The position numbers and the translations under genes were made by a program. The notes under the pieces are model-generated. The model did not search any database. It saw only the letters and a program-made list of their open reading frames with translations, and was not told the DNA's origin. From Fimbriosthenelais zetlandica (Eukaryota), in NCBI GenBank assembly GCA_977030845.1, contig OZ365113.1:12958001-13022000 (forward strand): 64,000 bases of DNA, given 5' to 3'. Below are positions 3,201 through 62,784 of this stretch, in pieces; position 1 is the first letter of the stretch, and every line of letters begins with the position of its first letter.

Positions 3201-6200
3201 TGGGCAGTGCCACCTAACGTGAATCAACCTTTCATTATAAAAGAAGCAGCAAGGAAGAATCAAATTTGCATAACAAAACTGAAATATCAATACATTTATT
3301 TGGAGGGTTCCCCCCGAGGAGATTCGGTTACAGATATTCTATCCTCACCAAATTCCAAGCACAGTTCTTGCCACAATTTCCCTCCAGTATTGTATCAACA
3401 GAGAAGACATTGAGATCTAATTGATGCATGCCAGTGAGTGAAAAAATAACATCAAGAGAGGAAAAAGGGCCTGGATCCGACTGCAACTCGGCTCTATCTC
3501 GTTGATTAATTTTTCTCATCTCAGACCTATTTCCTTTAGTTTTGGAAACAATTAATCAGGAATTTCAAGCGGGGTTAATGAACTGTTGTGCTTTGCTTCT
3601 GTAATGACATTCAGATATGGCGACACTGAGGAATCTTTTACTTGAATATGGCAGTTAATGGGGCAAAACTGTGCAGTATGAAGCATCCATTACGACGGCA
3701 ATATACTTATTAAACTGAAAGCTGAGCGCATTAATATGGCACGAGTGGCATCCAAAACAGCTCTGTTTACAAAGCCAAAGAGTCGTTACATGGGGCCGAC
3801 TGGCGAGGTAATAGGTCACATTAATCTTCATCACATGTCTATGTATATGTGCGCTATGAAAAGTGACTTTTATAGTCAGTTTGATGATTTAAATATCTCA
3901 ACATAATGCCGGCAGGGAACTATAAATGGGCCAGTTCAATCAACCAAATGTATTGGTCAGCGTATGAATGTTTTTTTCCTGAGTGCATACATGTATTAGT
4001 GCTCAGCCATATAGGTTTTATAACAAATCATTAAATTCGGTGAAAGTAGGCACGGGCTGCAACAATGAGAGGCAGGACATCAACAGTGGTAGCATATAAA
4101 AGCTGCTAAAATGGTGGGTATGTGGGGACAATTAAAGTATGATAATTGTAAATTTTAAGCTATTCAATAAATGTTTGGAAGGTTCCAGCATCCACCCCTG
4201 TCAACAAAGTGTACAGATTGTGTGTTTGCTTTCGCCCCTCCCTCTAGGGTCCTTTCTACAACATGTGCATGTCATTCCTGTCCTATGAGAAGACCCAGTC
4301 CCCAGTCACCGTACTCCAACGACTACGAGAGATATCTCTAAGAGTTGCATGGACTGATCTCCAAAAGGGGAAGGGGCTGAATCTCATTAATACAAACCAT
4401 TATCTTTACTCAAAGCTTCAATATTAGGTTCATACATAAAATATAATTAGCTAGCACAGGCCCATAAACTATTATATTGAAGGCTTTCTTTTCTTCATTT
4501 CATTAATGCTTGGTCTAAAAACTCCCTGCCTTCAGGATGAGGAATAGGAGAAGTTTAATTTCCAGTAAGATTAAATTGAAACTAACGATGAGTTTCAATT
4601 AGAGGATAAGGTTACATGATTGCAATCAATTCTGCCACTTCCCAAATCTTCTTCCTTTTAACCAATTAATAAAATGTCAATGTCAAAATGTGATTGGTTT
4701 CTCCACGGTCCTTATGGTTCAGAGAAGTAGTAACATTGTGAAACTACACCGTCAGATGGGAGCATTTCAGACGTGCATCTCTTAGACGGGAATCATTTTG
4801 GTTTAGTGTACGTGTACACTCTAATACAAGGCCTAGCATCGTTTGGTATCACACTCAATAATGAGCGCTAGCGGCCAACAGTACCCAACTAATGGACTCC
4901 AGTCTCAAATATCACCCAAAAGCTTGAATTACAGTGCAGACAATTACATGGCTCGAACCTTTTTAAATAATAGGGTGTCCCTCCGAATTATAGAGCTGTC
5001 GCTACAGCTTCTGAAGAACAATATCCCATTTTGAAAAGTCAAATATATTATATTTTTCCCTCTATTAAGTTAGCTCAAAAATCCTAATCTGATACGGAAA
5101 TTGAGTATGTGATTCATAACCAAAAATCATGTCTCACTGCATGTAAAAAGAAACAAATTTAAAACCCAAACTGATAACAGGAATCCGAATGCATGCATGG
5201 TGCCTGAGAACTGAGCCATGATTTCTATATTAGAATGTTCTTTCAATGCCATCTCAGGATAAGGGTAGTGAGGCCCTAGTCAATGCCGACTGACAGATGC
5301 CGTGATGGCATCATCGGCTCCTGATGACCCTCTGACGGTAACTGTCACTACTCATCTGCTCCTCAACTGCTCTGGACGTGTGCCGAGTGACTCGTCTACA
5401 GGCAAACTGTGAAATTGAATGGCTGTTAGCTTGAGGACAACTTTCAGGATTAAATCCTCATTGCATCCTTCCCCCATATCCACTCACTCCAAAAGGTGGA
5501 GTTACGGATCGAGGAGGAAGTTAACATTCCTGGCTCAGGAATAAAAAAAAGATAAAGTTTCTTAACATAACTCTACGTAAACAATTATATGAAGCACCAA
5601 AAGGCAGGCGTAATAAAGGCATGTATATATTCACATGTGACACATAAGTGATGTCATAAAATATTATGCCAGAAGATTATTATGACCAGGTATATCATGG
5701 AACCGCTTCAACAATAAGATAGAAATCATGTGCGTGCTTAAACCTTTTTTCCGACCGAAAAGAAACTAATGAATATTCATCACTTGGCTGCTGTAGAGGG
5801 CCACTATACGAGCCAAACATTAGGCATATATATACACCACCTCCTCATAGGACTGTATGGAGGAGTTGGTCCCCTCCAGGCTGCCTCCCATGGCCAACCA
5901 TTGTGCCTTCTGGCGATAATACTATCATTAGGAGGCACACAACACACTTGTGCTCGTTTAGATGGTTCTTCCATGATGAATCAGCGGACTAAGGGTGCTC
6001 GGGGGTCCTATAAAATCCAACATAAACCCTCACAGCAAGCCCAATAATAAGCATGGACCCTCTCCGATGACCCCCGGCTTTCTCTAATGTTACTCCCACA
6101 GCCTGATCAAGGATAACTGTTTGGCTGTACATCATCCTGTTGCTCCTGTATGCCAGTGTCACCAAGGTCCGCATTCCTCCGCGGGCTGCCATCAACAATT

Positions 6201-45583: not shown

Positions 45584-46629
45584 CTGAAAATAAAATTTAA
45601 AAAAAATCGTTATAGATGTGTGCCGATAGAGCAAAACCAATGTATGGCTACCGGTAAAATCATTTATAAATCTATCACAAGGTAGACTTATCACTAATTT
45701 ACAATACCGGTATGGGATAGACCTAGGCCTACTTGAAACACGTTACCGGTAGACTACCGGTAATTTTTTTTCGTTTTCATTTTTACAGTAGCCTAGGCCT
45801 ATTACCCAGACAGTAGGCTACCAGGTAGGCCTACTTAGCTTAGCCTAGGCTACTGTAGGCCTACTTTATAAAATTCAACATAGCAATGCCTAACCACAGG
45901 TTTTTAAAACATTAGTGGCGACCTCTCTTTGTTCAGACATGAACTAGATTTATAAGCCGTTCACGAAATCTGCCTGTCTTTGAATTCCATCTAACGGTAG
46001 AAAATATAACCTATTAGCATTTACTATCCTTGCTATTAAGGCCTAGTATACCCCCTAAAATTACTTTAAAAAATTAAACGAATATAATTTTCAATAGCAA
46101 TAGACTCTTTAAGGAGATATAAATTAATATCGGTATATTGAACCTAAAATTAGGCTAAATACAAATTTTAAATCAAGCCTACAGTCTTAACATAAACTGA
46201 TAAACGAGTAGAACTATAATGGTTACGTACTCTGCATTCAAAATATACAGCAGGCATTAAAATAATACAGATAGATCTATAAGGCTCATCCTCAGGCTCA
46301 GGACTCAAGACTCAACTTCAATTTGACATGCCAAATTCAATGTCAGAGGTAAAGTTGATATTCTTGGACAAATGTAGATCCTTCATGCCAAATCATTAAA
46401 GGTGTTGACAATATACTGACAAGTACTTGTATCTACTTTAAACAGGTCTAATAATATGCTAACTGTTACTTCAATGTACGGTAACGTTTAGAGTTGGACT
46501 TGGAGGGAACTCACCAATAAACATAAAACAACACTGCATCACCCCGGCGGCCCCATGAACAGCGATACATATTGGTCATTGCTCGTTACATCTGGCGTAA
46601 ATGAATTAAAATATGCGGTCTATACTCAC

Positions 46630-46800
46630 ATCTGTCATTCAGCGACAATGTTCACAATGTTTAGTGCGATAATAATCCAGCTATGCCACTTATTATTACA
46701 CGCAAACCGGGTACACTCGTGAAGGGTTTCCCCAACGGAAGTGCCATTAGGCTCCGGGCATTGTGGGTAATAAAAAGAGTAGGATCGTCTGCATGGAAAT
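46630..46800 (-). other. Possible first (leader) exon of the minus-strand gene; 5' boundary approximate
   Basis: Donor GAT|GTGAGT at 46630/46629; CpG-containing sequence upstream; no good acceptor seen. Confidence 0.4.
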
Positions 46801-47307
46801 TCTAGGCTTTGTTTCAAAGTGTTACGCTATTTATCATCACTTTTGAATAGAAAATAAACAAAATATACGACCACTGGTTGTCCCTAAAAGCGTTCGAACA
46901 TATCTGACATTTCTTTTTGGTATAGAAACATAGTAATTGCCTATAACCCCTATTATCGCTCACAACACTTTTAGTTTCAGATTTACTTGCAAGGTGGCAT
47001 AAGCTACCGGTACCGTAACTTACTTTCCCGCCGGGCTTTCCTAGAGACATGATTGTATGCATATACAAAATAACATGTTTCACTTTTTTCCAAGAAAGAT
47101 CAAACAAAAATAGGCCAGATCTATGCATATAGACCTGTTAGACGGTAGGCCAAGGCCTAGGGAGGGGTCATTATTTTACGGCCGGGGTTGAAGTGTGTGT
47201 TGCATAGGCCTACCTGGATGATTCGTTGAGGACAGTCAAGATTCCCGGAATTAGGCTACATTTATCGCTCTCTAAAATGGAGAGCGCCCTGCATCTCCAG
47301 TGTAAGA

Positions 47308-47380
47308 CAGGGCCGTAGCCAGGGGGGGGGGGGGGGGGGGGGCTAAAGGGGCTGCAGCCCCCCCCCCCCCCCCCCCTTAC
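47308..47380. repeat. G21 / ggggctgcagcccc / C19 fold-back, likely part of a dispersed non-autonomous repeat (with the ggggcttcgccccctgggcccc segment near 47896-47917)
   Basis: G-run 47322-47342 complementary to C-run 47358-47376 around a palindromic core. Confidence 0.55.
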
Positions 47381-47404
47381 CAAAATCAAGTAAAGTTTTT
47401 TTAA

Positions 47405-47585
47405 TGTCCCTCGCTTGACACTCAGCAAAAACAGGACAGTAGGCTACTAGGATTGGTCAACTCAGTGTCAGTATATATGACTGTGTGAGGTCCATGTCAT
47501 GTGCCTGTGATGTGATATGCCTACCCCAGTGAAGGATACCTCAGTGAGACATCACTATAGAGCATTGGGCTCACTGTCACAACTA
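47405..47585 (+). mobile_element. Degraded SINE-like fragment (central domain); shorter antisense pieces at about 48437-48490 and 48690-48735
   Basis: cactcagca...ctaggattggtcaactcagtgtcagtata...cagtgagacatcactatagagcattgggctcactg resembles, from memory, the conserved core of widespread invertebrate tRNA-SINEs; the segment gcattgggctcact recurs in reverse complement twice downstream. Needs a Dfam/Repbase check. Confidence 0.4.
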
Positions 47586-48258
47586 GGTAGGCCTAGGCCT
47601 ATATTACCGCCTAGATCGAGATGTTCTAACTCTATCCACTCCCTGCGCTCCCTCCTGTTTCATTTCTTTCCTATAGACCTAATCCACACCCTTACCGTGC
47701 CCCTATATAAGGCCTACCCTCCATTCCATGTCATTCCCTTCCCCGGCAATGCTCCTCCCCTCCCCCTTGATTTTCTGCCCCTCTCTGGGTTACCACATGT
47801 ATACGTCAGAAAAAAAAATTTCATAGGGGTTGACAGAGAAAAGTGTCCAGAAATGCTCTTAAAAATCCCTCAAGATTCTGAAGCCATGAGCTTCCGGGGG
47901 CTTCGCCCCCTGGGCCCCCACAAGGGACACTGTCACTGGCCCCCAGTAGGCCTATGCCTATATAGGCTCCTAAGGCGGCACCCCAGGCGATTCTAATTCC
48001 TGCAGGAGGTTTAATTTTCTTGTGGTAAACAATAAATAATCATAATTCTAAGTTTAGGCCTACTGACATAGTGCGTTACTCTAATCTATTTTGAAATATC
48101 AAAAATAGGCCTATAGAACATAGATTGATTGGAGAAAACAATTTTATTAAGGGCAACCAAGTGTTGGTAAGGGCGACCATTGATTTATAGTAGCCTAGGT
48201 CGCCCTGCTGGCGACCAGGGTAGCCTATTTTACTAAATTTAGGGAGCCTGGACCCCTG

Positions 48259-48735
48259 CAATAGGCCTACCTAGGGCTAGGCCTACTATTTTCAGTCATT
48301 TCAATTTATGCCCTTTATGTTCAAATACCTAGTAAACCCCCGCTAGGCTAGTTCACAGGCATCAGTAATTTTCTATCCCAGGTGCTGGGAAATCACATCT
48401 CCGGGCTTCTAGATTTCAAAATTTTTCAGTTATCATGTTAGTGAGCCCAATGCTATTCTATACTGCTGTCTCATTCAGGTAGGCCTATCATGCCACCAAT
48501 AGGCCTACCTAGGGCTAGGTCAACTATTTTCGGTCATTTCAATTTATGTCTCTATGTTCAAATACCTAGTAAACCCCCGCTAGTCGAGTTCACAGGCATC
48601 AGTCATTTTCTGTCCCAGGTGCTGGGAAATCACATCTCCGGGCTTCTAGATTTCAAATTTTTTCAGTTATCATGACGGTGCCTATTTGTGTTAGTGAGCC
48701 CAATGCTATTCTATACTGCTGTCTCATTGAGGTAG
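48259..48735. repeat. Tandem duplication, 238-bp unit, about 94% identical plus a 16-bp insertion in copy 2
   Basis: Copy 1 48259-48496 and copy 2 48497-48735 align directly by eye. Confidence 0.92.
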
Positions 48736-48886
48736 ATAATCATTCAGTCAGACGTCAGTCCGAAAGATTTCTGGATGATTTTGGTGCTTTCCTATAATGT
48801 AAAAATAAAATGCTGAGCGATGCCCCAGGACTAGTCTGGTCAGGGATGGTCGATTTTCCTTGGTCTGGCTATGATAGGCCTACAGT

Positions 48887-48972
48887 GCAGCCACCTAGTG
48901 TTTACCTTGTGCATCGAGAGTGAACTGAGCTCCGCCGCGCCTTTACTTCAGCGGTAAACCACCAGGTGCCAG
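48887..48972. promoter_or_regulatory. Divergent pair of CTCF-like motifs
   Basis: Minus strand ACACTAGGTGGCTGC (48901-48887) and plus strand CCACCAGGTGCCAG (48959-48972), compared with the core CCACYAGGTGGCAG. Confidence 0.35.
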
Positions 48973-50300
48973 CACTGTTTCTAGTCGCTGAGTGCCCAGG
49001 GCCAAGCCGGTTAATGCCGGCGTCGCTAGGAATTTTCAGACGGCGTTTGTAGATCTATTAAAGCACCTAAATCAGACAGAATTGAAATCAGTTGGTAAAT
49101 GTACATGGAAAATCTATTGCATCCAAAAGAACAGAGCTACGCTGCCTGTAAACTTGTAAACGGCGAGAGAAATTATAAGTGAGCGATAATAGAGGTTTTG
49201 GCAGATCCCGCCCCAGAACGAGCATTGACCGTCCAGTGGCTCCCTCGCCACCTATACGGCAAATGAAGGAACTAAGATAAGAGAACTTTCTCCCCTATGC
49301 GACTACCCCACCACCGGCAAAAGCGGGAACTAATGCTCAATGCTAAGTGAATGGTAGCCATTGATAATTCATAATTATTTACAGGGCACCCGCCCAACCA
49401 AATTTGTCTAGGCCTACCGGTACTTCACGTTTTCATAATTTATAGGGTTTTAGCCAAGGCATTGTTTGTAATTTCAGCCCATGCATGTTACTGTACGAAA
49501 ATTTATTTTGGGCGGCAGGGTGCTCGCCATTCAGTTGTAAATTCTTTGGGGATGGATAAGCCTATGTTTTTAGAGGGTGCACTCTATCTTTCAGAGCGCC
49601 CGCCTTATAGGCCTATGATGGCATTGATAGGCTATTACACAAAATTACTTTGGGGGTGCTCTGAAAAAGTTTGCAGGGCGCTCGCCTGAATTTTGCCGGG
49701 TGGTGAAGATGAGATTCCGGATAGGCCTATCTTGACTATAATGGATTCGTCCGACAAGTGGCTTTCCATGTTGTTCTTAGCCTAACGGCTAACCTCCTCC
49801 TTTTCGGTGCCTGGTCAAGTGTGGTAGGGGCAGAGTTGCGCGATCTGGAAGAAAGGAGCGAAGATAATAATAACACAATCTACAAAATGACGAAGGAAAA
49901 GCAATCATGCTAGGAGGCCTAGGCCTAACATAGAAATGTGTTATCATAAGCCTAGGCCTATATTAAAAATTAGACTAGGCCTAATTATTTGTCTAGTAGG
50001 CCTAAGCCTACATAGGCCTAAAAGGAATTAGACTACGGTATCAGAAATGTTGTGTTTTCTATCACACAAGTTTCATCAGCTTAGGCCTAATTAATTATAA
50101 GCATAGGCCTAATCCTCAATTAAAATCTCATTGTTTTTATTTTGCGCCCTTTATATTAGAACATAGACATAATTCTATGTCTATGATTAGAACTGTAGTG
50201 TAACTGCATAGGGAGATTCTTTATGTTGGTAGTGCCTACCGGCAGGTGCCGCCACAGTGCTAGGCCTGTATGAGAGCGTTGTAACGGGTGTGCGCTTTGA

Positions 50301-50309
50301 ACCGGAAGT
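50301..50309 (+). promoter_or_regulatory. ETS consensus site, probable core promoter of the zinc-finger gene
   Basis: ACCGGAAGT exact match about 380 bp upstream of the inferred start codon. Confidence 0.45.
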
Positions 50310-50688
50310 CTATGATCCATGTTTACTTTCATCCCTCCACCCTGTGTAGGCCCAGATTACTTGACAATTTCTGGATTAACGTCACCTCTCACTTAGTGGG
50401 AAATGTTCTGTTAATACTTGATCATCTTCTTGTTCACTAATTCGGATCTGAATGTTTTATATTTTATAACGCCAAACTAGGAAGTAAGAGATAAGAATAA
50501 GATCCTGTTTTAACTAGGCTATGGCCTAACCCAGGCCTGGGCGAGAGTGAAAATTGGGCCATTGGCATTGACATGGTTTCTGATAGTTATGTAGTAGACC
50601 TTCTCATTAGACATTACCAAAGGTGACACCAATGTCTACCAATGGTTTGGAACTTTTGATATCGAAAGAGGAATAATTATTTCACAAC

Positions 50689-50722
50689 ATGACTGGAACA
50701 TCGATGTCCCAACCAGATACAG
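50689..50722 (+). CDS. Zinc-finger gene coding exon 1 (MTGTSMSQPDT, phase 1)
   Basis: ATG in acaacATG; donor CAG|GTAGGC; phase joins exon 2 in frame; acceptor ttctcattag at 50610. Confidence 0.6.
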
Positions 50723-51220
50723 GTAGGCATAAATCTAGTATTATTTAATTATAAAATGTCAAATTAAAACTTTATTTATAAATTATAATATTAGCTGATC
50801 GTAGTGCTGGGATAAAAGCTAAAGACAATAGGCTTAATGTGTTAGAATAGCTCCTGAATAGCTAGGCCTACCGGTATATTTCTGGACCTGTTTGGACTTT
50901 CAAGCATTATTGCTACGTAGCCTACGTAGCCTAGAACTACCAATCTAGACTTGTGATATTATTGGTAAAATCTTAAGCTGATCTAGGCCTAATATAAGCG
51001 GCTTAGCCATTATAGCAAGGCCTAATAATAATATGACAAGGCCTATAAATATAATCTGGGTCCAGAATATATATACGGTATAAAACTACAATCACAATGT
51101 AATGTCTAGGCTTAGGCTATAGACTACTGATACTAATAGTACGGTAGGCCTATGCCTACGGGTAGAAGTTTCTCACAGTGTGAATAACATACCACTCACG
51201 TTTTCTTTTCCTCTTGCCAG

Positions 51221-51322
51221 CTCGTGACACCATGGACCATGTTGTATGTGGTTCGTGTGGAGAAAATTTTGGCCTCGCCAATCTACCGGAATTCATCCAG
51301 CATAAACAGAACTTTTGCCAAG
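51221..51322 (+). CDS. Zinc-finger gene coding exon 2: CCHC finger of BCL11A ZnF0 type (CGSC-x14-H-x4-C)
   Basis: Strong acceptor ttttcttttcctcttgccag|; donor AAG|GTAATA; 102 nt, phase 1-1; DHVVCGSCGENFGLANLPEFIQHKQNFC has the spacing of BCL11A [28 protein letters not shown]. Confidence 0.9.
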
Positions 51323-51480
51323 GTAATAGACTCACTACTATATGTGATTCGATCACCTACTATACGAGTACACTAAAATAGTCTAATTCAATCACCTACT
51401 GGTAAATTTGACAGACAGATAATTCCTTTGTATTTTCTTTAATTACAAAGTATAATTTGTATTCCTTTTATTCTTCCCAG

Positions 51481-53610
51481 GGATAGGAGCAAAACAGCTG
51501 ATGTGCCAGTCATGTCTGCAGAAGTTCTCTTCTCCGTGGGGCCTCCTTCAGCACGCCCAGTCTTCCCATTCATTAAAAATTTTCTTTGGGCAAGGTACGA
51601 AGCCCTCTACCCTCCAATCAGATCCACAGAAATCCATGATTGTCTTAAACAAGTCTAAATTCAAAGTTCCTAATGGGGACCAAGCTGTGGAGGTGAGTAG
51701 TCAGACCTTCCCTACACCCACAACTACTGTCAACCAAGTGATTACTACATCTACAGTGGCAACAGTGACCCCTGGGAAAGCACCTGCACCAACCAACATC
51801 TCTGGTAAATCAAGTCAGGTCACTCAGACTGGGCCGCCTTCTTCCTCCTCTATCAAAGTCAACACTAATTCAGTTGTTACCAATTCACAGAGTGTAACAA
51901 CTAATGCCATGAAAGTTGTCCCTGTGGCGGAAAGGTCAAGAACAGAGACAACTGCAGTTTTTACCATGTTACCTCATATACCAGTCCTGCAGCCAATCAC
52001 ACTTCCTCAGGGAGCAATGTTAGGAGCCACCCTGGCCCCAGGAACCTTGACGCCCAGGATCATAGCTTATAATTCAACCCCAAGACGTCCTGATGTAGCA
52101 AGCCTGGAAAAGAATGTTAAGATAGCTCCTAAACCTACAGCAAAATTAAGCTTTGATTTGACGCCTGGGAAAGCACCTGCACAACCAGTCCACTTGCCCA
52201 CCACAAACTTGGCCTCTACGATTGACTCTCCTTCTAAGGTTCAGTTTGTTTCCAAAGAAATTACCCCTGTTGCTAGACCTCCGGAAAAGAATCCTACAAG
52301 CAATGAACACCCTGTAAGTGTACTTCTGAAAGAGAAGCAATTACCAATCGTGCCTTCGACTCCAACCCCAGCTGAAACAGTACCAAATGAAGATGTGCTT
52401 AAATCAAATAAAGACCTTCCTGTTGCGTCAGAATCAAAACTACCACATGCAATTGTCCTTGCACAGCCAAGACCAGTTCAAAGCCAACTTGTACCTAGGG
52501 TGAGCAAGACTAACTCATGTCAATGTTGTGCTAGTGCTGAAACCTCTGTTTGCCCATGTGGACCAATAAGCCCTCCACGCAAAGAATCAAAATCTTCTTC
52601 TAAACCAGCTAAGCTAGTAGGCAGTGATGAAAGTCAAAATAGTCTGAACTTGGATGGTGACATAGTAAGCACCTCTGATCTGTTTAATTCCACTATTGAA
52701 TCACATGAGACAGAAAACCCTAGTCCAGAAGGTGAGAGCCCAGAGAAGGAAGGAGAAAAGGAACTTTCAGAATCAGAAGATGGAGTACAGTGTTGTAACA
52801 ACCAGGACTGTGGAGTGACCATTATGCCAGGAACTCATGAACGTCTCAAGAAATGTTGTAATGCTGTTGTTCCAAAGAAGCGCAAGCGACATATGGAAAC
52901 CAAACACCGAATCAAAAAGCGTTCCGTAGAGGCCTCCTATACTCCAGAAGAGAACACTATTTATATTGACTTCCAGACTAATTCAGATGTTTCTTGTGTT
53001 TCTGGTTCTAACCCAGGTGTGACAGTGAGTGCTGATAACTCTAGCAGGACTATCACGGTGAACACCAGCACTGCCTTGATGGAGCCAGAGTCGATGATAA
53101 GAAACCAGAGTCCACAGTCTCTCACCCTGTCTATACCCTGTTACACCAGGAAGGCACCATGCTCCCTTCTTGGACGACAGAGACCCGTCAAGCTTCCACC
53201 GGACCAGGCTCAGGATCACATGCGGGGCTGTAGATGTGAATGTTGTCCTCTTGCACTACAACTTCTCAACTCAGTGCGGGACATTAAAACAAGGCGGCGG
53301 TCTGGTAGCAGTGAGGGGAAAAAGGATGCGGCTCATACAAAGGATCATACAAATGAGGAGTTAAGACAGATCATTGCTAATGTTAAAACGGAGGATCTAT
53401 TGTCAGAAGAGAGACCGACTGAGGAGAGTGGAAGGAGCAAATCAGGAATAAATAGACTAAAGGCCATGAAGAAGTCATCATTGATGAAGTCACAAGCTTC
53501 TATTAATAAAAAGAGAAGGTATCCCACATCCAAACCGTTTAAATGTGACCAGTGTGATCATGCATTTAATCAAAGAATTCACTTGAAGAAACACCAGAGT
53601 AAACACACCG
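51481..53610 (+). CDS. Zinc-finger gene coding exon 3: BCL11 ZnF1-like C2H2, long S/T/P-rich region, Cys clusters, basic NLS-like motifs, first C-terminal C2H2
   Basis: 714-codon ORF; CQSCLQKFSSPWGLLQHAQSSH resembles BCL11A [22 protein letters not shown]; acceptor ttcttcccag|; donor CCG|GTAAGA. Confidence 0.95.
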
Positions 53611-53718
53611 GTAAGAAATGTATTGTAGATACATGTTTTTGCTAATAGAGCTCTACATGTAATTATTTTCTTCAATTTGGTTCTACTCGCATTTCATGAA
53701 TATTTTATAACGTTTCAG

Positions 53719-56921: not shown

Positions 56922-58166
56922 CTAGGATGGTGGTGAGGTATGTAGGTTTGCTCTGGCAGAGGAGTGTTTCTTGTAAGATATGAGATATGTGGATGTACAG
57001 TCGACGCCGTCCACGTACGAAGTCCTGATGTCAAAGTATTTCCCATGTCTTGTCCGTGAATGAGAACTCCCTCTGGACGTCTCCCTCCATCGAGCATTCT
57101 GGCGTCTTTTTCTACAACAGACGCAAACTGTATCATATAAGACATCTCTGAACTGTCCGCCTACAGTATAATACAGGATGAAATTACAGGAGAAATTGAT
57201 GACCTGTAATAGATTGGCTACAGCTCGCACTACTAGAAAGTGTTCTATGTGTTTGTGATTGAGGCGGACGATGTCATGTAGGAAGTCCATGATCTGGCAG
57301 GGAAACACCAGAGTTATGAACATGACTACGATGAGTATTAAGGTTAAGGTGATTTTAGCACTGACTCCACTGTGTATTCCATGCACATGGCAGCGTCTCT
57401 GCGTTTGTTGTGAGTTCCTGAGGGCTTTGATCAATAAACAATTACAAACACTAAGAATAAAGGCTGGTATGATGACGCCCAAAACATTCCTCACCCAAAG
57501 ATAGCTGAGCCCCATGTCTGTGTTCAAGTCGAGAAATCCTATATCCATAATGGTATATGTAGCGTTATTCATAATGAACTTCCTGGCCGAATACTGACAA
57601 AAAGATGGTGCATTAAGGATGATACAGGACGCTATAGTGATGCCATAGATCACACGAGTTCGTGCCTTGGAAAGGATGAACCTGGCCTTCAAGGGGTGGC
57701 AGATACCTACATATCTAAATATGGACAATATAACAGTAATCCATGTACTAACAAGGATAAATGTGGTTACCACACCAGTACCATACATCTGGTAATAAAA
57801 GCTGAAACCTCGATAACGAAACAGAGATGTGGTGTCTGAAAGCATTACTGGAGCCCTTGGGAATATGGCAATACAGAAGAACATGTCAGACAATGCTAAT
57901 AAGATCATGCCCAGAAGTGCGATGCTTTCTGTCCCGTCTGCTTTCATTTTGGATCGTGTCCTTACTCGAACAAGAACGATCAAGCTGATGAGGTTGCCTA
58001 GACAACCAAAGACACTAACTGTAGGTGTGATTATGAGGTATAACATGTCCTGGATGAAAGTTTCAAGCATTCCATTTTCCTCAGACTGGAATGTCTTAGG
58101 ATCACTAAGGTTTGTGAACAGCTCCATTGTAGAATTGACCGTGGATGAATTGTCGCCGTCTGCCAT
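56922..58166 (-). CDS. Class A (rhodopsin-like) GPCR, FMRFamide/sex-peptide-receptor-like group, 414 aa, uninterrupted CDS
   Basis: Seven hydrophobic segments; TM1 GN, TM2 LALSD, TM3 FRYVGICHP, TM7 NFILY, helix-8 FR, C-terminal CVCC; N-terminal sequons NSS, NST, NLS. Confidence 0.95.
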   Translation of the reverse strand: MADGDNSSTVNSTMELFTNLSDPKTFQSEENGMLETFIQDMLYLIITPTVSVFGCLGNLISLIVLVRVRTRSKMKADGTESIALLGMILLALSDMFFCIAIFPRAPVMLSDTTSLFRYRGFSFYYQMYGTGVVTTFILVSTWITVILSIFRYVGICHPLKARFILSKARTRVIYGITIASCIILNAPSFCQYSARKFIMNNATYTIMDIGFLDLNTDMGLSYLWVRNVLGVIIPAFILSVCNCLLIKALRNSQQTQRRCHVHGIHSGVSAKITLTLILIVVMFITLVFPCQIMDFLHDIVRLNHKHIEHFLVVRAVANLLQVINFSCNFILYYTVGGQFRDVLYDTVCVCCRKRRQNARWRETSRGSSHSRTRHGKYFDIRTSYVDGVDCTSTYLISYKKHSSARANLHTSPPS

Positions 58167-62419: not shown

Positions 62420-62784
62420 GGGCTCATCCACTAGGTCGCAAGGGGGAAGCGAGCAATGGCGATCAGTGATCACTAGCGATCAAATCGCTCAATATTTAGA
62501 ATGTTTAATATTTTGTGCGATTAATCGCATTTTTATGATCGCATGTAGCTTGCGATCCAATCGCTTATATGGATGAACACCGGCGATCTGATCGCTTGTA
62601 CTGGCGATCAGGGGCGATCTAATCGCTAGGTACAAGCGATCAGAGGCGATCAGGGGCGATCTAATCGCCAGATAAAAGCGATCAGATCGCTGCCACCTCA
62701 TCCACACCTATGTGATCGCTTCGGATCGTTAATAGCACTGATCGCAAGCAATCTCTTGCCCCTTGCGACCTAGTGGATGACCCC
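62420..62784. mobile_element. MITE / non-autonomous DNA transposon, 365 bp, 26-bp TIRs, TA (TATA) flanks
   Basis: Left GGGCTCATCCACTAGGTCGCAAGGGG versus right CCCCTTGCGACCTAGTGGATGACCCC (25/26 inverted match); no internal ORF; about 17 GATC-centred internal repeats. Confidence 0.88.

Follow-up and report, generated by a model that had tools for sequence, protein, structure and literature searches.

An island of TA-bounded micro-insertions upstream of a zinc-finger gene, consistent with accumulated excision footprints of TA-duplicating transposons

The window, that is, the whole stretch of DNA analysed here, comprised 64,000 nt (C19:12958001-13022000) of a 447-Mb animal assembly. A large exon of a C2H2 zinc-finger protein was located at 51233-53645 (+), preceded by a short ATG exon that encodes a CxxC...HxxxxxC motif. 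A single-exon rhodopsin-family/Srw-like GPCR gene (Pfam 7tm_1, E 1.8e-16) was located at 56922-58166 (-), and an exact-protein look-up of it in other assemblies returned no record. Upstream of the zinc-finger gene, and ending about 80 bp before its ATG exon, lies an island of short motifs bounded by TA dinucleotides (Table 1). The ETS-like motifs ACCGGAAGT and ACGGAAGTG were found within the island at 50301-50309 and 46735-46743; judged by their sequence they could belong to the core promoters of two divergent genes. No CpG island underlies the motif island, where CpG observed/expected was 0.43-0.71, like the remaining window. At 47321-47377, within a repeat of which C21 holds an 86% copy, a block able to form a perfect hairpin was noted, consisting of about 20 consecutive G, a spacer of 11-17 nt and about 20 consecutive C.

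The window contains 30 copies of TAGGCCTA and 8 of TACCGGTA, nearly all of them inside the roughly 5.5 kb of the island (the 28 TAGGCCTA there span 45724-51152), while TA dinucleotides, unlike these clustered octamers, are spread evenly across the window. Markov-1 and Markov-3 simulations gave an expectation of 0.6-1.3 TAGGCCTA per window against the 30 observed. Chains of the form (TA[CG]2-4)n TA numbered 11, against 1.0-1.2 in Markov simulations of the window, with a simulated maximum of 5.

Table 1. Features of the island and of the repeat copy used for polarisation (positions in the window).
Feature	Position	Strand	Description
Micro-insertion island, TA-bounded	45649..51152	.	28 TAGGCCTA, 7 TACCGGTA, many TAGGCTA/TAGCCTA, 10 of the 11 window chains
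Chain TA-CCGG-TA-GAC-TA-CCGG-TA	45744..45762	.	Two TACCGGTA 11 bp apart
Chain TA-CAG-TA-GCC-TA-GGCC-TA	45784..45801	.	First 15 bp form the left arm of an inverted repeat
Chain TA-GCC-TA-GGC-TA-CTG-TA-GGCC-TA	45841..45863	.	45843-45857 form the right arm of the inverted repeat
High-copy interspersed repeat copy	48734..49743	+	At least 3200 first-look candidates, about 90% identity; used for polarising motifs
TAGGCCTA	48875..48882	.	6-bp insertion at consensus TA, ...CTATGA-TA-CAGTGC...
TAGGCCTA then TACCGGTA	49409..49422	.	Substitution from consensus TAGGCCCA; then 6-bp CCGGTA insertion at the terminal TA
TAGGCCTA	49608..49615	.	6-bp insertion at the second TA of consensus CCTTATATGATGG; hot site
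TAGGCTA	49628..49634	.	5-bp insertion at the TA of consensus GATATTACAC
TAGGCCTA	49722..49729	.	6-bp GGCCTA insertion at the TA of consensus CCGGA-TA-TCTTGAC
TACGTAGCC TACGTAGCC TA	50914..50933	.	9-bp tandem duplication, read directly

Motifs linked through shared TAs had been described in an earlier, sequence-only reading as resembling serial excision footprints. All the chains that it quoted (45744-45762, 45784-45801, 45841-45863, 47005, 49409, 50859, 50914 and 51140) were found as written, and the 15-bp inverted repeat that it placed at 45784-45798 / 45843-45857 is present and perfect. Some of them were read differently here. The TACCGGTA pair at 45744-45762 could be two events or an 11-bp duplication. 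The chain at 50914, taken before as linked scars, is more simply read as a 9-bp tandem duplication. TACAGTA and TACTGTA had been assigned to Sleeping Beauty-type scars, an assignment that was given up: they show neither enrichment in the window nor co-localisation with the other motifs, and they form the two outer tips of the 15-bp inverted repeat. Because of this position and the lack of enrichment, the CAG/CTG chain units are better taken as belonging to a block that was templated or duplicated. For the stretch 45600-47200 there is no paralog and 45744-45863 is single-copy, so the motifs at 45744-45863 would be explained by analogy with sites of the same island, 3-4 kb distant, that were polarised.

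Genome-wide, TAGGCCTA occurs 113,146 times against 2,970 for a reversed control, and TACCGGTA 18,503 times against 14,334 for a CpG-free reversed control. The excess of TACCGGTA is less clean because many of its sites among the matches listed fall in tandem arrays that repeat about every 21 and 40 bp. Arrays of about 40/21-bp period whose unit includes TACCGGTA, and which inflate its count, lie at G000:C1:152134-152661, 268955-269566, 308720-309371, 633117-633607 and 686155-686541. Octamer enrichment was measured in a sample of 217 kb, consisting of the window and fetched loci. Among the strongest non-microsatellite 8-mers of this sample were three TA-NNNN-TA palindromes, namely TA-GGCC-TA (57 observed, 2.8 expected, 20x), TA-CATG-TA (50 observed, 5.0 expected, 10x) and TA-CCGG-TA (14 observed, 1.3 expected, 11x). 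The remaining TA-palindrome-TA octamers occurred at or close to their expected counts, and none of the non-palindromic 4-nt cores was prominent in the sample. This limitation of strong enrichment to palindromic 4-nt cores is what inverted termini would lead one to expect. The 7-mers found with the palindromic 4-nt cores have exactly the cores GGC/GCC and CGG/CCG; TAGGCTA/TAGCCTA were the next most enriched among G/C-only cores (60 against 23), and in the same sample TAGGTA/TACCTA, TAGCTA and TAGGGTA/TACCCTA showed no enrichment.

Co-localisation was scored within 300 bp of TAGGCCTA. TAGSCTA (47%), TACCGGTA (57%) and TACSGTA (28%) stood above a background of 7-8%, and within the same distance no co-localisation was seen for TACATGTA (6%), TAGATCTA (8%) or TACAGTA/TACTGTA (11%). 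TACATGTA, which is about 10-fold over-represented in the 217-kb sample, is dispersed (for example at 3988, 14822, 18140, 45396 and 55025); it may stem from a CA...TG-ended family, as older scars, or have another origin. One-mismatch neighbours of TAGGCCTA showed an excess of about one third of the intact excess, corresponding to roughly 4% decay, which is compatible with scars younger than their approximately 10%-diverged host repeat.

The origin of the motifs was polarised with the repeat copy at 48734-49743. Gapped pattern searches were run genome-wide, and the states of the repeat copies were recorded at each motif of the window copy. The repeat is unclassified; its 5' 630 bp is much commoner than its 3' 380 bp, and a tRNA-like part was looked for in it and none was found. 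At the 48875 site, 96 of the 100 listed copies have a 4-base gap of TA length (mostly ATAC, with a few point changes), TAGGCCTA is present in 2 (the window copy and one other) and TAGGGCCTA in 1. The 49608 hot site has the consensus in 22 of 34 copies and a GGCCTA insertion in 7 of 34, at the second TA in the window copy and at the first TA in the six others. At the 49409 site, where the chain TA-GGCC-TA-CCGG-TA had been attributed to insertions throughout, the attribution holds for one half: the CCGGTA is a 6-bp insertion present only in the window copy, and TAGGCCTA arose by substitution from TAGGCCCA, as it did in 5 of 21 copies. Exact 5-6-bp insertions with a duplicated TA therefore account, in the island's repeat copy, for 3 of its 4 TAGGCCTA, for its TACCGGTA and for one TAGGCTA. 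The predicted 5-6-bp indels, TA versus TA-xxx(x)-TA, were thus seen between this copy and its genome-wide paralogs.

Other copies of the repeat carry chains that arose independently: TA-GCC-TA-GCT-TA-GGCC-TA, TA-GGCC-TA-GATC-TA and TA-GGCC-TA-TA-ATAT-TA. Further copies contain TA-GGC-TA, TA-GGCC-TA-GGCC-TA and TA-GGCC-TA-GGC-TA. Serial events that reuse the TAs of scars, also proposed before, are supported by these separately arisen chains and by independent hits at adjacent TAs. On the comparison of repeat copies, the motifs originate as insertions and the events are recurrent. Counting against a pure insertion origin are the substitution at 49409 and the substitutions between two tandem units. 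The latter form a tandem duplicate at 48259-48735, with units of about 238 bp (48259-48496 and 48497-48735) and a 16-bp indel between them. Paired substitutions between the units fall exactly on two motifs (TAGGCCTAC versus TAGGTCAAC and TAGGCTAG versus TAGTCGAG), placing 4 of about 13 differences on 14 of 240 bases.

Copies hit at the 49608 hot site were unaltered at their other checkable sites, and the window copy was hit at five sites. This combination points to a target preference that is both local (AT-rich TATA) and regional. As an unselected control, 28 copies of another MITE outside islands were inspected. Their insertions were mostly ordinary tandem duplications, and 1 (TA-CGG-TA) of about a dozen insertions of at least 4 bp was of the TA-core-TA type. 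The near lack of such insertions in the control MITE argues that the process is strongly regional or site-specific.

We consider the scars to be best explained as excision footprints of TA-duplicating cut-and-paste transposons of the Tc1/mariner-like kind, with a probability of roughly 0.7. Tc1/mariner transposases cleave the non-transferred strand a few nucleotides within the element, and non-homologous end joining keeps the terminal 2-4 nt between duplicated TAs (PMC6943129); the scars of Sleeping Beauty are TACAGTA/TACTGTA (PMC6943129), and Stowaway/mariner excisions leave a small duplication with bases of the element ends (PMC4561436). A TA duplicated around a short insert, relative to the empty site, is the mark of such a footprint, and was found in the island's repeat copy at five sites as well as in further copies. 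In the proposed mechanism an element would insert at a TA, which is duplicated. Excision by a staggered cut would leave 2-3 terminal element bases on each flank, and end joining would close TA + GG and CC + TA. An element of the form GG...CC that retains both 2-nt overhangs would give TAGGCCTA, loss of one base would give TAGGCTA or TAGCCTA, and retention of three bases of a GGG end would give TAGGGCCTA. Alternatively, an element of the form GGC...GCC with 3-nt overhangs could produce the same 8-mer by way of its GC microhomology, and a mismatched overlap of 3 nt would yield the 7-mers too. The 2-nt and 3-nt models are not separated by the data. The CCGG scars would need a CC...GG-ended family with the same regional preference.

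The building blocks of the chains are 5-6-bp micro-insertions that convert a TA into TA-GGCC-TA, TA-CCGG-TA, TA-GGC/GCC-TA or TA-CGG/CCG-TA. The 5.5-kb region would be a strongly preferred target, in which repeated insertion and excision, sometimes into TAs made by scars, accumulates adjacent scars. Small tandem duplications would further shape some chains, and the 15-bp inverted repeat was probably shaped by templated repair. A wider version of the proposal is that an active TA-duplicating transposon with an extreme preference for few-kb, possibly promoter-flanking regions logs its insertion-excision cycles there, the palindromes having been taken over as boundary or protein-binding elements, or else being the work of a domesticated transposase in place of selfish hopping. 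We regard this version as speculative and unlikely.

Candidate donors were sought among TIR elements. The sequence-only reading had predicted TA-targeting elements ending in GGC or CCG. A TIR family with a TA target-site duplication does exist in the genome, and it starts with GG and ends with CC; its ends are GGG...CCC, departing from the predicted GGC, and no CC(G)-ended counterpart was found among the candidates. This family, M3 (L015:2274-3095), measures about 833 bp, has a TIR of 24 bp (GGGTAGGGTGGGGCAAAACGCCCA) and contains GGGGCAAAACGCCCA about ten times internally. About 84 termini were counted genome-wide, corresponding to about 42 copies. TA directly precedes 34 of 36 exact-match termini, and the outer flanks are unrelated. 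The TIRs are near-identical between copies, which suggests that M3 is young and was recently active. The spacing of terminus pairs is mostly about 833 bp; one pair is 3.4 kb apart (C1:57949832/57953239) and may be an autonomous copy.

Several M3 termini adjoin footprint-like motifs (CCGGTA, ACCGTA, TTCCGGTA, GGCCGGTA, CTACCGTA and GGCCTATA), far above the expectation from base composition. Reinsertion into the TAs of scars, as proposed earlier, thus receives support from M3 copies that sit in the TA of such motifs. One M3 variant has TA-GCC-TA inserted at a TA within its own TIR, and one M3 copy lies less than 1 kb from the repeat copy bearing the longest independent chain. The expectation of full elements at scarred TAs was disappointed at the hottest site (49608), where a trap search returned more scars and no occupied copy; the states seen at scar sites were empty TA and scarred. 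No M3 remnant was found in the 64-kb window. The GGG...CCC ends fit GG + CC and the TAGGGCCTA variant, but the 3-nt forms that they predict, TAGGGTA/TACCCTA, are not enriched, which counts against M3. A search among the candidates for a CC...GG-ended family with a TA target duplication, as a source of TACCGGTA, found none. The number of copies, about 42 against 113,146 TAGGCCTA, counts against M3 as donor; plausibly, a resident family of this small size could produce scars far in excess of its copy number, because each end-joined hop leaves a scar. By its sequence M3 is a candidate donor to which no transposase has been tied, and this counts against the excision reading. Both the making of the scars by excision of M3-type elements and the reason why certain regions are preferred are inferences.

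Other structures were rejected as donors or as elements. A 365-bp MITE at 62420-62784 (TIR TAGGGCTCATCCACTAGGTCGC, beginning GGGCTCATCC) has at least 381 first-look candidates, with many full-length copies at 77-96% identity. It carries a 3-bp TWA duplication outside an invariant TA, its ends are TAGGG, and the direct repeats beyond the TA were TAA/TAA, TTA/TTA, GAA/GAA, ATA/ATA and TAC/TAC. It was classed as PIF/Harbinger-type because of the non-canonical repeats GAA/GAA, ATA/ATA and TAC/TAC, and was excluded as donor. The scars themselves were not identified as PIF/Harbinger footprints, their sites being TA without TWA (for example GA-TA-CA). M2 (L002:5002-5164), with the apparent structure TA-CCC...GGG-TA, was excluded since the flank TAAAGGTG is conserved in more than 2,400 matches and the true terminus lies further out. 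The loci L002:5002-5164 and L004:2985-3167 represent a very abundant short MITE whose ends include TAAAGGTGCCCACACACTAATCCGAT, with at least 2,468 end-motif matches. The TIR-like pair TA-GGCCTACCTGRATGA at 47205-48487 of the window has boundaries that conflict with a C21 paralog covering window positions 47308-48556. At L024, L037, L017:2295, L005 and L004:2985 the inverted repeat continues through the TA, and these were discarded as termini. A 4-kb CAGT-ended structure at L007 was discarded as an element for want of a transposase ORF; inverted blocks of tandem repeats of about 36 bp (CAGTAGCTCACATAAGTGAGTACACCCTTCACTATA) were noted there at 614-950 and 4600-4890, 4 kb apart.

Among the rival explanations, templated repair would require no transposon visit for each scar. 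A few seed motifs would be copied locally at TA breaks by polymerase-theta-type end joining or template switching from a nearby TAGGCCTA template. The perfect 15-bp inverted repeat inside the chains, the very tight clustering of the motifs, the recurrence of the same few units in the chains and the smallness of the donor family relative to the motif count all speak for it. We nevertheless think it an improbable account of the whole, as isolated repeat copies gain a single clean GGCCTA at a TA with other checked sites unchanged, a constant palindromic core with an exact TA duplication is the signature of element ends and not of copied flanks, and the seed motifs would still require an origin. 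Micro- or minisatellite dynamics, in which (TAGGCC)n, (GCCTA)n and the like spread by replication slippage and tandem duplication, could draw on the common TAGGCCTAGGCCTA doublets, the tandem duplication at 50914 and the arrayed TACCGGTA among the genome-wide matches listed. In most events, however, the first unit arises at a lone TA with no prior repeat for slippage. No three consecutive TAGGCCTA at 6-bp spacing were found among the 100 genomic matches listed or in the window, and differing cores (GGCC, CCGG, GGC) alternate inside chains. Slippage as the main source is accordingly quite improbable.

Marginally less probable again is the view that a dimeric DNA-binding protein recognises these sites as a homotypic cluster, which selection has kept or created around two promoters. 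The 8-mers are palindromic and the island lies 5' of a gene, as such a cluster would have it; yet selection leaves unexplained the origin of a stereotyped 6-bp insertion with TA duplication that is also found in scattered repeat copies, where binding-site clusters would be expected to turn over by point mutation, and the level of decay looks neutral. Scar motifs may have been co-opted as binding sites later. Chance or an assembly artefact we regard as highly implausible. The analysis is based on assembled sequence alone, which leaves some room for artefact, but the insertions are precise, site-specific and different between repeat copies. Against chance stand a 20-40-fold genome-wide excess and simulations that never came near the observed counts. 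Excision footprints of TA-duplicating elements remain the reading that we prefer.

A single stereotyped scar apparently occurs about once per 4 kb across a 447-Mb animal genome, and once per 200 bp in islands. If this is true, scars record the landing sites of cut-and-paste elements independently of surviving copies. They would then allow direct estimates of target preference (local sequence and region), of excision rate and of the germline repair outcome, and would supply, beside genes, a considerable and so far unrecognised number of small indels and new palindromes.

In C. elegans, polymerase-theta-mediated repair of transposon breaks yields templated insertions. Repair of this kind could account for the 15-bp inverted repeat and the repeated chain units seen here; alone it fails to explain a constant GGCC core with an exact TA duplication. 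Published footprints consist of locus-by-locus accounts and a species-pair survey in rice (PMC5023962). In the literature searched, no description was found of a genome with one scar as its leading octamer forming islands, and no paper paired TAGGCCTA and TACCGGTA in the sense of scars. The motifs resemble Tc1/mariner footprints (PMC6943129) in the duplicated TA, in the short insert between the two TAs, which is palindromic or one of a complementary pair as expected from inverted termini, and in the joint occurrence of 7-mer and 8-mer forms. They differ in their cores, GGCC/GGC/GCC and CCGG/CCG/CGG as opposed to the CAG/CTG of Sleeping Beauty, and in abundance, TAGGCCTA being the most over-represented non-microsatellite octamer genome-wide (113,146) and lying in dense islands and chains; the link to an element was here drawn by inference and not seen at a donor site. 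In grasses, DNA transposons of the Mariner/Stowaway and Harbinger groups favour gene ends, where excisions leave scars and the surrounding repair is mutagenic (PMC5023962, PMC4561436). In rice, 158 excisions were curated by species comparison and their scars were heterogeneous (PMC5023962, PMC4561436). The gene-end preference and the scars are alike in the two settings, whereas in the present genome a single stereotyped scar predominates and builds up serially at the same places.
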